The translations under genes and the position numbers were made by a program. This document shows positions 5,391 to 13,321 of a DNA stretch of 64,000 bases, piece after piece; the stretch's first letter is position 1, and each line of letters starts with the position of its first letter. The notes under the pieces are model-generated. The model was not told the DNA's origin. It did not search any database and worked only from the letters and a program-made list of their open reading frames with translations. The DNA is from Heteronotia binoei (taxonomy: Eukaryota), in contig NC_083233.1 in assembly GCF_032191835.1 (NCBI RefSeq), positions 47,678,001 through 47,742,000 on the forward strand, written 5' to 3'.

Positions 5391-5536
5391 ATGGAGGCAG
5401 GGTCATTTTTGGCTTTCCAGCATGACAGAACAGACCTCCTAGCTGCTCTGGAGAAGCAGAGCCACACTGGGGACTTTGCCCAAGCTCCATCAGCTGAGAA
5501 GACTCCCAAAGGACAAGATGCAGAGACAAATCCCAG
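5391..5536 (+). CDS. TNIP-like coding exon 1
   Basis: ATG in Kozak context; donor CAG|GTGAGT at 5537; encodes [13 protein letters not shown]...AETNP. Confidence 0.75.
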
Positions 5537-8500
5537 GTGAGTCAAACAGTTTCTCTCTGAGTGATGGGCCAGAATAATTACCCAGAAGGAAAAAGACCAG
5601 GATCAGTCATGGCTGGTCACTGACCTCCTGTGTGGACCTGATGAGCTCCCCAGTTGCACCACCTTTCCTTCCGTAAATTGGAGATACCTGGTTAAACACA
5701 ATAAAAGGTGGAGGTTATATGCTTTCTGTGGGGCAAGCCTCACCTCTTAAAATGCTTGCAATGGTCTCTGGAGAGGGTGGAGATGTGCCTGAGTTCCATG
5801 GCTTTGTAGATTCTTGGATGTGCACTAGGGAGAATTGCACTGAACCCCTGCTCAGCCATGAAGCTCATGTTGACCTAGGGCCAGTTACTGTAACAGATCT
5901 CAGTGGATGGTTATGTAGGTTTGACTCACTAATGAAAACCAGATGTAATTTTTTCTGAGAAGTGGGTGTGGGAAACAACAGCAAGGGCCCCCAGCATGAA
6001 GTCTGAGAAAGCCACACCTTTCAGAATGAGTTTGCACCAAGTTAGAGAAATGAGCCAGGGAGGAAAATCAAGGCTGGGAAATGCCCAGACATGGGCACGG
6101 GGGACGGTGGGGGCGCATATTGGAAAACTCTGTGATGCCGTGTTACGTCATGGCTCCTCAATGAGATTAATCTTCCAGGGGTTCTATGGTCACCCTAAAA
6201 TAATGGAGGGAGTTGATATAAGGTGGGCTTTGACTGGTGATTCAAGAGTTATTTGAATGACTGCTTCTCTTTTAAAGATGATTTGACCCCCCCCACACCT
6301 TTCTGATCTCAGGCAGTGCCCTTCTCACGCACACATCGAAGAAGTCCTGCCTGACAGGAGTGACTCGGAGGAAATCATCACCTATATCTCTGAGAACACG
6401 ACTGTGACTTCAGCTGATGAGGAGAAGCTGCTGCTTCTCAACAGGAATACAGAACTGCGTCGAATCAACAAGGAGGTGGGTGTTGGGAATGAGGGGAAGG
6501 GAGGCCTCATGCCCTGGATCTGGGCAGATTGACAGGACTGAGGCTTGAGAGCCTTTGCAGGATTAAGGTAGAAGAAGATGTGGATCTAAGGTCAGAGGCA
6601 AGACCTAGCCGGGATCCCCAGAGATAAGGACTGGACCCAGTTGAAGAAAATAGCCAAAGAAGCCCAAAGAAGGGTACAAGAAATGTTGGCGGAAGGGAAG
6701 CTGGGCCAGTTTTCTTCCTCAAGCGAAACTCTACTGATAAATTTGCCTCTCCCTTAGGTTTGTTTAAGGGAGGAATCCAGGGCTTTTTCAGGGCCTTTTC
6801 AATGCAGTGCCACAACTATGAATCCCTCTCCTCAGAGACAACTACTGGCCAGGCTTCGTCACCAATCAAGGTTTAAGTTTTCCGATTCTGTTTGCATTTC
6901 TGTTAGATTTTATTAAACTGTTTTTCTGTTACTTTTGTAAAATGGTTTACGTCACTCTGATGTACAGGAAAACAGTCACAATGTTTTAAATGTATTTAAA
7001 AATTACCTTTTGCGGATTCTCTGTCTAAATTAAGGAGCTGTGAGGTGATTATTTGACAGCTTCTGCTCCCCTTTGGGGGCCTCCCACACCCCCATGGGAA
7101 AAACTCCGTTCCAGCAGACACCTCCTATACAATCCTTCCCTGTTACTTCCTCCTCTTTCCACTCCCTACAGCTGATGAAGCTAAATCAGGACTGGGACTA
7201 CATCTATCACTCCACCAGCCTGGGGCTGCAGCACAGAGTGAGGGTCCTGCAGGAGGAGGTGGCTGCGCTCAAGCTGCAAGCACAGAGCCTCTCTGCAAAG
7301 CTAGAACATGAGCAGGTGAGTGCCTGCAGTGGTTTGGCCCCTCCACTTCCACCCCCACCCCACCCCTAGTCTGAACAACCTAAGCCAGGGCCTCATGTTT
7401 TCTTGATTGTATAGGTACTTTCAAATATTTTGAAAATGGAGTGTAGGCACCACGAAATCACCAAATGTTGGGAGGTTGCAAGCCAAACATCTTATGAACA
7501 TATGAAGCTGCCTTATACTGAATCAGACCCTTGGTCCATCAAAGTCAGTATTGTCTTCTCAGACTGGCAGCAGCTCTCCAGGGTCTCAAGCTGAGGTTTT
7601 CTACACCTATTTGCCTGGACCCTTTTTTGGAGATGCCAGGGATTGAACCTATCTTCCTATGATGGAGGCAGCAGTTCCTTCCTGAAACGGTGCTTCCTGC
7701 AGACACAAAGTGGATGCCTCCAGACTTCTTCTGAAGCACCTCCTTCTCCAATGAGGCAGAGGAAAGTCATGGAAAGAAGCAAATGAGCACCAGGAAACCC
7801 ATCAGGGGTCACCATGGTGCCCATAGGCTTACTGACCTAAGGCAGTAAGGGTAGGCAAGGGACAGAGAAGTAAGATTTGGGGAGACAAATGGTGGAGGAG
7901 GCACTGAGTTACAGACAGGAGAGTCCAAGGAGAAAATGCAACTGTGGGACAACTCATGGTTTGGGTTGCCAACCTCTAGGTGAAGCCTGGAGATCTCCCA
8001 GCATTACAAAACTGATTTCCAGACAACAGAAACAGAACAGCTGCTTTGGAGGGAGGATTCTGTGTCATCCCATCCCTGCTGAGGTCTGTCCACTCCTCAG
8101 ATCCTGCCTATCAGGTTCCACCCCCAGAATCTCCAGGAATTTCCCAACGCAGAGCTGGCAACCTTACCAATGACCAAAGACAGATGAAGTTATGTGTTCT
8201 TCCTAGGATGGAATAAGGGAAGGGAAGCAAAAAGCAGGGGCAGGGGTTGAACCATGTATAAGGTCTCAGACAGTTCTCTGCTTCTTCATTCTGTCTGCCA
8301 CAGAACAAGAGAGAGTATTATGAACAGACCCTCTTCCAGGAGCTGAAGAGGAGCCAGTCTTTACAGGAATATGTGAGACACCTGGAAGGCAGACAGTTTC
8401 CCAGCCCAGGCAGGCAGGCAGCACCGGTAAGTTCCAAGGGATCTGTCTGGAGGGCTGGCTCTTGCGACTGGAAAAGGTAGGCCTGTAAGGAAGGAGATGG

Positions 8501-11800: not shown

Positions 11801-13321
11801 CAGAGAACGCAAAGCTCAGGCAGAAGGAGGAGGAGATGAGGCAGCAGATGGCCTTGCTGGAGGAGCAGGTGAGCTCAGTCTTCTGTCAGCAGCCACACCC
11901 CGGATGAGGCAAGTGGGCACTTCCAGGTGGGGGGGGGGGGGGAAACAAGAGAATTTTGACCACAATGGGCAGCTTCAGGGTGGTCAAGGGTCACATGGGC
12001 AGACGGACAGTCTGCCTCCCACAGCTTTCTACAGAGATTAAATTATCATGAAGGCACATTGGTTCCAGTGGGGGTGGAGTGAGGATGGAAGGCAAAGTAA
12101 CGGAAGAGTTGGCTTAAGACATCTCGAAGGAGAGTAAAACAGCATCTGCAGTGAGACTCTGTTCACTGTCCCCACCCCACCCCTATATGCATGCAGACAT
12201 TCTATGTGGCTGGCTTGCCTCTGGTGTCAATGACCAACTCCTGGTATGATGTGGGGGGGATGCTGTGCAGGATTGGCATAGGGAATAGATTCCGCCCCCT
12301 CATCCAGCTTCCAAGGGATACACAACGCATGTCACCACCATGCCCAAATTATACATTATTATTTTTAATGTGGAGCCACCTGCTTCTCCCGAACTGACTA
12401 ATAGCACTTTCACACAGGCTAAATAATGTTGTTTCAATCCACTTCAGTAACTGTTTGCAAATGGATTTTGCCATTTCACACAGCAAAATACAGTTGCAAA
12501 GTGCACTGAAAGTGTTATTTAGTGTGTGTGAAAACACCTCAGACAGTCTAGCATCAGATGTGAGGGCACTTGTTTCCAAGTGCATGGGACCTCGATCCAA
12601 ATTGGGGCCACAGCCCAGTGGAAGAAGTGGCTTCAGCCTTCCTCCTGGAAAAACAGCAGAGGGTGACGCTTCTCCCCTTCCCTATGCCGCTGTCCCAAAG
12701 TGAATGAGGACCCTGAGCCTGCTTGTGAAACAAGTTCCCTCAAACCTAATGCCTGAGCCAGTCAGATAGGAAAAAATACAGACACTACACATTATAAATA
12801 GTAAGGCATAGTTTGAGACCAAGAACAGGGCAGGCATGGAGAACTAGAGAATTTTATGCAAAGGGAAAGGGTTGAAGCAGGTTGAGCACAGTTTGCTCAC
12901 CTGGCTCCATCTCCCTCCTCTCTCTTCAAGTGCAGAAGGCACTTATGGACCAGCGGCCTGCACAGCCAGCAGTAGGGCGTGGCAGCAGAAGCTGGCTTTC
13001 CGCCCTCTTTGAAGTTACCTTCTTTGTTTCAACTGTCATAGCTTTCCTAGCAGTACTGTACTCCTGCTAGCAAACAACACATTACTAAGAGCCACCCTCC
13101 ACCCACCTAGTCTCCCTTTTCTCTCCCACTTTATGCAGCTGAAGATCTTTGAGGACGACTTTCGGAAGGAACGCTCAGACAAGCAAGTGCTTCAGCGCCT
13201 CCTGAAGAGAAAGCCTGAGGCCAAGAAGCCTGTCCCGCCCCATCACTGCAGGGGTCAGGAGAAGCCCTCAAATGGTTCCTGTAGCTGCAGCTGCCACAGC
13301 AAGAACCACCATCACCAGTGA
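5391..13321 (+). CDS. TNIP/ABIN-family (TNFAIP3-interacting protein 3-like) coiled-coil protein, 7 coding exons, 374 aa
   Basis: Exons 5391-5536, 6313-6475, 7172-7315, 8304-8426, 10542-10781, 11743-11868 and 13139-13321 are all GT-AG with compatible phases (2,0,0,0,0,0), totalling 1125 nt. The start has a strong Kozak context (ccgccATGG). Motifs: [17 protein letters not shown] (AHD1-like; TNIP1 has LLEVNKQWDQHF), [15 protein letters not shown] and [12 protein letters not shown] (UBAN/AHD2-like). Confidence 0.88.
6313..6475 (+). CDS. TNIP-like coding exon 2
   Basis: Acceptor tctgatctcag, donor GAG|GTGGG; encodes ...[19 protein letters not shown]. Confidence 0.88.
7172..7315 (+). CDS. TNIP-like coding exon 3 (AHD1-like)
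   Basis: Polypyrimidine acceptor, donor CAG|GTGAGT; encodes [12 protein letters not shown]...KLEHEQ. Confidence 0.92.
7497..7650 (-). mobile_element. tRNA-headed SINE with CR1-like tail
   Basis: CATATGAAGCTGCCTTATACTGAATCAGAC tail and GGGATTGAACC B-box remnant; homolog at 36526-36700. Confidence 0.6.
8304..8426 (+). CDS. TNIP-like coding exon 4
   Basis: Acceptor ctgccacag, donor CCG|GTAAGT; encodes [16 protein letters not shown]... Confidence 0.88.
8717..9581 (-). mobile_element. CR1 LINE 3' fragment (ORF2 C-terminus and 3' UTR), decayed
   Basis: Minus-strand [25 protein letters not shown] and [18 protein letters not shown]...WNSL...FKRGLD; CR1 tail; (CA)n inside. Confidence 0.92.
8813..8840 (+). 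repeat. (CA)n microsatellite
   Basis: Direct inspection. Confidence 0.9.
9682..9845. mobile_element. hAT MITE (CAGGGCTTTTT family), internally deleted
   Basis: TIRs; 8-bp TSD CTCAAGTG/CTCAGGTG. Confidence 0.75.
10191..10389. mobile_element. hAT MITE (CAGGGCTTTTT family)
   Basis: TIRs; perfect 8-bp TSD GATTTTGA (10183-10190, 10390-10397). Confidence 0.88.
10542..10781 (+). CDS. TNIP-like coding exon 5
   Basis: Acceptor ctcttccttag, donor CAG|GTAATT; ends [17 protein letters not shown]. Confidence 0.85.
11743..11868 (+). CDS. TNIP-like coding exon 6 (UBAN-like copy 1)
   Basis: Acceptor cttcttttgcag, donor CAG|GTGAGC; encodes [22 protein letters not shown]...LLEEQ. Confidence 0.92.
13139..13321 (+). 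CDS. TNIP-like terminal coding exon 7 (UBAN-like copy 2)
   Basis: Acceptor cccactttatgcag; encodes [22 protein letters not shown]...HHHQ and a TGA stop. Confidence 0.9.
   Translation: MKIFEDDFRKERSDKQVLQRLLKRKPEAKKPVPPHHCRGQEKPSNGSCSCSCHSKNHHHQ

Follow-up and report, generated by a model that had tools for sequence, protein, structure and literature searches.

Does the genome of the gecko Heteronotia binoei contain a gene of the TNIP (ABIN) type in addition to TNIP1, TNIP2 and TNIP3? This question is raised by a gene located at positions 5391–13321 on the plus strand of a 64,000-nt stretch of contig NC_083233.1 (the whole stretch is referred to below as the window), for which the original prediction proposed an extra member of the TNIP/ABIN family. 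The analysis described here indicates that the gene is likely to represent a separate family of the ABIN/NEMO (UBAN) kind and not to be an orthologue of TNIP1, TNIP2 or TNIP3. The idea of an additional TNIP-type gene held in that the gene is transcribed and conserved, has a UBAN nearest to that of TNIP1 and belongs to an orthogroup of its own; the A20-binding segment that had been assigned to it was not recovered.

Judging by the sequence comparisons, the UBAN (AHD2) of the gecko protein is closer to those of the ABINs than to those of NEMO and optineurin, and its nearest solved relative is the TNIP1 UBAN, represented in the PDB by the structures 7EAO, 7EAL, 6N5M and 6N6R. When the gecko protein was used as a query against the PDB, the TNIP1 UBAN was the best match (E-value 3.8e-6), followed by TNIP2 (0.15) and NEMO (about 1), and optineurin was not among the matches. 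A profile of the family again placed the TNIP1 UBAN at the top (6.5e-8), with NEMO at 0.018, optineurin at 0.067 and TNIP2 above 1. The predicted UBAN region of the TNIP/ABIN type is thus borne out by both queries.

The coding sequence comprises 1125 nt including the stop codon and is divided into seven exons:

5391–5536, plus strand: exon 1, start codon plus 48.7 codons, with a GT donor; contained in the LOC132579280 protein
6313–6475, plus strand: exon 2, acidic segment and start of helix 1, with AG/GT ends; phase 2 in, phase 0 out
7172–7315, plus strand: exon 3, coiled coil (helix 1); tblastn identity of 53–69%
8304–8426, plus strand: exon 4, conserved end of helix 1; joined to exon 5 by an RNA contig
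10542–10781, plus strand: exon 5, variable disordered linker followed by the start of helix 2; joined to exons 4 and 6 by an RNA contig
11743–11868, plus strand: exon 6, 42 codons, phase 0/0; first UBAN-type motif, matching the position of the TNIP1 UBAN
13139–13321, plus strand: exon 7, phase 0; second UBAN-type motif, His/Cys-rich tail and stop codon

The exon blocks were located by tblastn with three orthologues (Rhineura, echidna and Pogona), followed by reading of the splice sites. All introns have GT–AG ends, and the phases fit, being 2/1 at the first junction and 0 at every later one. The exon translations, taken in order, are exact substrings of the NCBI “uncharacterized protein LOC132579280” (Heteronotia binoei, 374 aa, P0055), which was used as the spliced reference for all whole-protein comparisons. 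The seven in-phase exons encoding 374 aa that had been read from the sequence are therefore the same as the public annotation; since the NCBI product name is “uncharacterized protein”, the gene is annotated but unnamed, and its description as largely uncharacterised is also correct. The window contains no runs of N, and the locus in GCA_032191835.1 (CM063335.1) is identical to it across 23,321 nt; the coordinates of neighbouring genes were converted from that locus. An alternative acceptor of exon 2 at 6414 was rejected, as it is out of phase and tblastn with the orthologues places the acceptor at 6313. Conservation differs along the gene. The N-terminus encoded by exon 1 is poorly conserved, is predicted to be disordered (predicted local distance difference test, pLDDT, below 50) and shows a weak match to the N-terminus of the Rhineura protein. 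Exon 2 has 62–67% identity to the Rhineura and echidna proteins (tblastn) and contributes near-invariant columns to the family alignment, and W111 in exon 3 is invariant across 51 family sequences. According to tblastn of each protein against its own locus, the boundaries of the blocks agree in fugu, bowfin and gecko; in echidna, this applies to the final exon only.

An AlphaFold2 model (monomer, 51 family sequences) predicts two long helices, at residues 82–182 and 248–337, with pLDDT above 90, while the N-terminus, the linker (183–247) and the tail (338–374) are predicted to be disordered, with pLDDT below 50 in much of the 192–247 region. The second helix is encoded by the end of exon 5, exon 6 in full and the initial third of exon 7. 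It bears two UBAN-type motifs, located at the starts of exons 6 and 7, exactly 42 residues apart; the UBAN-like segments that had been predicted are thus present, with a Pfam match in exon 6 and PDB matches in both exons. The second motif, in which the DFxxERxD core is complete, is more conserved than the first, E319 and D320 being invariant in 51 of 51 sequences. The first motif is DYxxER in sharks, DYxxEH in most other lineages and DYxxEQ in squamates, including the gecko. Both motifs and the spacing of 42 residues are kept in all aligned non-marsupial sequences. In a profile comparison, exons 6 and 7 match each other in exact register (positions 2–19 with 2–19; hhalign P 1.2e-5), which fits an old exon duplication, and the two motif exons probably arose in this way. 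The Pfam CC2-LZ family (PF16516) matches exon 6 at an E-value of 1.3e-5 and the LOC132579280 protein at 9.2e-7; the scores of the five members scanned are 29.7–36.8 bits, and those of the shark and coelacanth members are 35.9–36.8 bits. By its profile matches, the gecko protein is a UBAN adaptor, having a UBAN helix with a DFxxER core.

The tail differs between lineages. Most non-squamate family members share the PVLVHRCNN segment, a CxKHCxxH...CxxH cluster and a terminal QASPFSIDY-type end. The latter and the second Cys/His cluster (CxKHCxxH...CxxH) are both present in sharks, sturgeon, turtles, alligator, ostrich and echidna, and both are missing from squamates, including the gecko. Where it is conserved, the C-terminal tail could be a zinc site combined with a short docking motif.

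The alignment with TNIP1 spans 61 residues, from upstream of the first motif through “QLKIFED”, which is paired with “QLKAFKD” of TNIP1; by position, it is thus the first motif that corresponds to the TNIP1 UBAN. In TNIP1, “QLKAFKD” likewise lies 42 residues past the start of the UBAN, and a degenerate remnant of the second repeat may persist there. Exon 7 alone matches PDB TNIP1 with an E-value of 0.0085; the atlas search with this exon gave no usable match. D472N is known as the ubiquitin-binding mutant of TNIP1. According to the alignments, the residues equivalent to D472 of human TNIP1 are D279 and D321, in the first and second motifs of the gecko protein, respectively. The human D472N variant was projected to impair function (PMC11940065).

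Like TNIP1, the gecko protein is a helical coiled coil with a UBAN-type DFxxER(S)D core. Unlike TNIP1, which shows only LKAFKD at the corresponding place, it has a second intact DFxxER core; it ends in a His/Cys-rich tail and not in the C-terminus of TNIP1, and its gene adjoins a RagA/B gene and is not at a locus of the 5q33 type, where human TNIP1 lies. Human TNIP1 has about 636 aa, compared with 374 aa in the gecko protein. No match to TNIP1_N was found at an E-value of up to 1 in five family members, with a Pfam copy in which the presence of PF27887 was not confirmed. In the atlas, 90% of the members of clusters named TNIP1 carry TNIP1_N, and the score of these clusters is 0.94, against 0.97–0.99 for the family's own clusters. 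The combination of TNIP1_N and a length of about 500–640 aa, by which TNIP1 orthologues were recognised, is thus not observed in the gecko family, and orthology with TNIP1 is argued against because TNIP1-type clusters carry TNIP1_N and the family has no match to it. With NEMO (IKBKG) and optineurin, the gecko protein shares the CC2-LZ match and the location of the motif on a long helix of the dimer type. Unlike NEMO, the family has no match to the NEMO N-terminal domain, and its PDB matches to NEMO are far weaker than those to TNIP1; none of the other known modules of NEMO and optineurin is apparent in it.

Homologues were searched for by HMMER with exon 6 and by three word-index searches, which together returned several hundred related proteins. 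Family members were found in sharks, bichir, sturgeons, gar, bowfin, teleosts, coelacanth and lungfish among the fishes, and in all three amphibian orders, turtles, alligator, squamates, palaeognath birds (ostrich, emu, rhea and kiwi), echidna, platypus and six marsupials among the tetrapods. As the searches and the tree indicate, the family is a single-copy orthogroup of jawed vertebrates, from sharks to marsupials. In a quick maximum-likelihood tree of 51 members, each species is represented by a single copy and the branching mostly agrees with the species tree; squamates are on long branches, and the gecko protein lies inside the gecko clade. The four gecko proteins are 79–85% identical, and both motifs are kept in them. 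The N-terminal acidic segment, the LNQEWD coil, the block at the end of helix 1 and the tandem motifs (the first being TEIYEADY) are near-invariant outside marsupials, and the gecko protein, aligned with 50 other members, shows all of these hallmark segments. Zebrafish si:ch211-153b23.7 belongs to the same orthogroup, and there is no difference in kind between the gecko protein and this protein or the many “uncharacterized LOC” proteins of other species; the gecko protein is distinguished from most non-squamate members by the lack of the C-terminal end motif.

The searches returned no placental mammals and no neognath birds, either in the best 120 of 159 matches of the full-length Rhineura query or among the 115 matches of the bilby query, all of which are family members, and the 55 matches, likewise all from the family, of a profile of the C-terminal half (E-value up to 10) limited to lengths of 105–332 aa, a range that excludes most family members. 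No TNIP1, TNIP2 or TNIP3 protein reached an E-value of 10 with this length-limited profile or the bilby query; the family forms a tight cluster of its own, which argues indirectly against orthology with any of the three. In line with the apparent absence beside human RRAGB that had been proposed, the gene is missing from all placental-mammal proteomes reached by the searches. Retention in reptiles, which had been proposed, is also correct, but this description is too narrow: the gene extends from sharks to monotremes and marsupials, and neognath birds lack it. In marsupials, the first motif is ruined by prolines, loss of the DY pair or a deletion, the second motif is partly eroded, and the branches are long. 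Because of the eroded motifs and the long branches, the marsupial copies look like genes under relaxed constraint, and the gene is apparently decaying there.

The original prediction also assigned an AHD1-like (A20-binding) segment to the protein. As no coordinates had been given for it, exon 4 was assumed to be the likeliest candidate. This part of the prediction had to be abandoned: the match of the TNIP1 AHD1 peptide is no better than chance. The AHD1 stretch of TNIP1 (PDB 7EAL) scored −0.1 bits against the family profile in HMMER and was not aligned. When the 23-residue TNIP1 AHD1 was compared with 51 members without gaps (BLOSUM62), shuffled sequences reached the observed score in a fraction of 0.25–0.97, and the best position was never in exon 4 in any of the 51 members. 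Recruitment of A20 is not supported by these comparisons.

Transcription of the gene was assessed using three RNA runs of one study, which hold 0.13–0.14 of the sampled words from the 7.9-kb gene, approximately its exonic fraction. RNA contigs were compared with positions 7900–13899 of the window only, and the junctions 1–2, 2–3 and 3–4 are outside that stretch. RNA contig X1 record 1 (915 nt) traverses exons 4, 5 and 6 with adjoining record coordinates, and the junction of exons 6 and 7 is joined by RNA contig X3 record 12 (324 nt). Transcript support for the exon junctions, on which the prediction had been made to depend, therefore exists for exons 4–5–6 and 6–7, in contigs from two organisms. 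The contigs differ from the window by about 1–2% in the 3′ untranslated region (UTR). In this region (13173–13899), RNA contig X1 record 6 shows 11 base differences and an 8-nt insertion behind position 13559. The source of the RNA must thus be another individual or lineage than that of the assembly.

A neighbouring gene lies downstream in the window:

approximately 16495–20772 (range of the coding sequence), minus strand: RagA/B-type GTPase gene, 313-aa product, Gtr1_RagA

This gene is tail-to-tail with the ABIN-like gene, the stop codons being about 3.2 kb apart, so that the Rag neighbour that had been predicted is present. Its exon at 18524–18916 matches Pfam Gtr1_RagA at an E-value of 1e-28 and PDB RagA at 1.5e-44. 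The human Rag chains returned by the PDB search were all RagA, and the neighbour is designated here as RagA/B-type. The same tail-to-tail arrangement can be noted in alligator and in the turtle Carettochelys. No neighbour was called within 10 kb of the echidna, Antechinus and bowfin loci, and tblastn with the gecko Rag exons, run on the flanks of the first two of these loci, found no match there. The marsupial orthologues are on sequences of 78–103 Mb, about the size of marsupial X chromosomes; this agreement is only suggestive.

Several observations weigh against a separate family with the proposed features. NCBI names the members from sharks, coelacanth, bichir and eel “TNFAIP3-interacting protein 3” without “-like”, and in UniProt the turtle members (Chelydra and Pelusios) are likewise called TNIP3 without “-like”; such names leave room for orthology with TNIP3. 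The fugu locus has no Rag gene within 10 kb and has other neighbours. The Arg of the ER pair is absent from the first motif in most species, the CC2-LZ score of the gecko protein (29.7 bits) is below the Pfam gathering score of 35.3 bits, and the raw reads of two larger RNA runs give almost zero depth on the exons, which points to low expression in these two samples. If the names are taken at face value, the family is the true TNIP3 orthologue, and TNIP3 of placental mammals and neognaths was relocated from the Rag gene, lost one UBAN and acquired a new C-terminus. Many family members are indeed labelled TNIP3 or TNIP3-like, and no separate TNIP3 was seen from any lineage having the family gene. 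TNIP3 (ABIN-3), with about 325 aa, is similar in size to the gecko protein, and its core, IYEEDFKKERSD, is near the family's second motif. However, the names within this one orthogroup are inconsistent, including uncharacterized, si:ch211-153b23.7, TNIP1, TNIP1-like, TNIP2, TNIP3, TNIP3-like, optineurin, trichohyalin and others, and therefore look like best-hit labels. The C-terminal-half profile (105–332 aa) found no placental TNIP3 at an E-value of up to 10. Human TNIP1 and TNIP3 are presumably far more alike than either is to the gecko family. Human TNIP3, located at 4q27, is not beside a Rag gene, and this difference in linkage argues against orthology. The main argument against it, an indirect one, is the distribution in birds: palaeognaths keep the family gene and neognaths lack it, yet TNIP3 is annotated in chicken and zebra finch and can be induced in chicken by lipopolysaccharide and Salmonella (PMC6754502, PMC9249843, PMC3585881). 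Taken with the inconsistent naming, this makes orthology with TNIP3 unlikely.

Slightly more unlikely still is an older UBAN gene predating the vertebrate genome duplications, either sister to all ABINs or nearer to NEMO and optineurin, which would not be an ohnolog of TNIP1 and TNIP3. Its architecture is unlike that of any described ABIN, neither AHD1 nor a TNIP1_N match is detectable, and the IYEADY of the first motif appears to resemble the NEMO and optineurin cores more than it does IFEEDF of TNIP1. The PDB ranking, by contrast, places TNIP1 far above NEMO and optineurin, and the 61-residue alignment with TNIP1 runs into LKxF of the second repeat with the same offset of 42 residues; in addition, all matches are from jawed vertebrates, with no cyclostome or invertebrate member returned. 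It could also be supposed that the gene is decaying in the gecko or is a mis-annotated non-functional remnant, given the long branches of squamates, the absence of the QASPFSIDY-type end and the second Cys/His cluster, the Gln in place of Arg or His in the first motif of geckos and the low RNA depth. This is very improbable: the frame is open over seven exons with intact splice sites, spliced transcripts are present, the four gecko proteins retain 79–85% identity with both motifs, and the truly relaxed marsupial copies look different, with prolines and deletions within the first motif. A separate family of the ABIN/NEMO kind, distinct from TNIP1, TNIP2 and TNIP3, is thus the reading that we prefer.

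If the gene does belong to such a separate family, its protein would, by analogy with TNIP1 and NEMO, form a parallel coiled-coil dimer, in which one or both motifs of helix 2 may bind M1- or K63-linked ubiquitin chains. The spacing of the two UBAN-type sites, six heptads, could give a preference for longer chains, and helix 1 and the His/Cys tail might act as partner-binding parts. The likely role, again by analogy, would be to tune NF-kB or cell-death signalling, or else a sorting step that depends on ubiquitin, in an innate-immune setting. A bolder proposal, which may hold but which we regard as doubtful, is that the family keeps the ancestral ABIN design, with a tandem double UBAN that arose via early exon duplication and of which LKAFKD in TNIP1 is a relic. 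The family would then be a fourth distinct reader of long ubiquitin chains, lost independently in placental mammals and neognath birds and decaying in marsupials.

NF-kB and cell-death signalling have central brakes and switches in the ABIN proteins and NEMO, and among human autoimmunity loci TNIP1 is a major one. Here, an extra gene of the ABIN type appears to have been conserved for more than 400 million years in sharks, fish, amphibians, reptiles, ratites and monotremes. It is absent from human, mouse and chicken, and standard models would therefore miss one component of the pathway. Zebrafish (si:ch211-153b23.7) and Xenopus give direct genetic access to the family, and the tandem UBAN on one helix offers a testable design for the reading of long ubiquitin chains. 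In marsupials, the lineage nearest to placental mammals, which are without the gene, its loss is apparently under way. A literature search found no paper on the family or on the zebrafish gene name si:ch211-153b23.7, and no gene named TNIP4, ABIN-4 or ABIN4, the mentions of ABIN4 not looking like gene names. Nothing was found on a joint TNIP1/TNIP2/TNIP3 paralog, on TNIP3 in marsupials, or on TNIP3 together with NDNF in chicken. As far as could be found, the gene is undescribed; the UBAN kind is known, and the tandem-UBAN layout is unusual.

In the fugu (Takifugu) locus, the neighbours within 10 kb (locus positions 15496–22079) are a Sua5/YrdC-domain gene and a MmgE/PrpD (IRG1/ACOD1-like) gene. 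According to one chicken paper, ACOD1 and TNIP3 showed the strongest induction of all inflammatory genes after Salmonella infection.

Further features of the gecko window can be noted. An open reading frame (ORF) at 30142–30669 on the plus strand has an RGCC-family match of 36.3 bits (cut-off of 27), which indicates an RGCC-type gene near the Rag gene. Human RGCC is located on 13q14. The RGCC exon is at least compatible with the idea that the ABIN-like gene is an ohnolog from the two rounds of genome duplication on the 4q/5q/13q/X paralogon, an idea that is founded on human map positions. Intron 4 (8700–10400, with minus-strand ORFs at 8846–9588) contains reverse-transcriptase fragments similar to CR1 and other long interspersed nuclear elements (LINEs). 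A very deep RNA pile-up with many variants and odd joints was observed over this repeat; it fits a dispersed repeat and not the ABIN-like gene. Simple repeats are located at 8793–8848 and 11149–11185, and the ORF translations at 8593–8887 read as a CA/TG repeat. At 47943–49106 on the plus strand, ORFs of 157 and 210 aa adjoin each other; they have no Pfam match at an E-value of up to 0.01 and may either form a large coding exon, from an unknown gene, or have arisen by chance. A 308-aa ORF at 50715–51641 on the plus strand, with its neighbours at 49315–52464, reads by eye as a reverse transcriptase and is probably a LINE insertion. A single tRNA-Glu (TTC) gene, confirmed by ARAGORN, is located at 24088–24159 on the plus strand.

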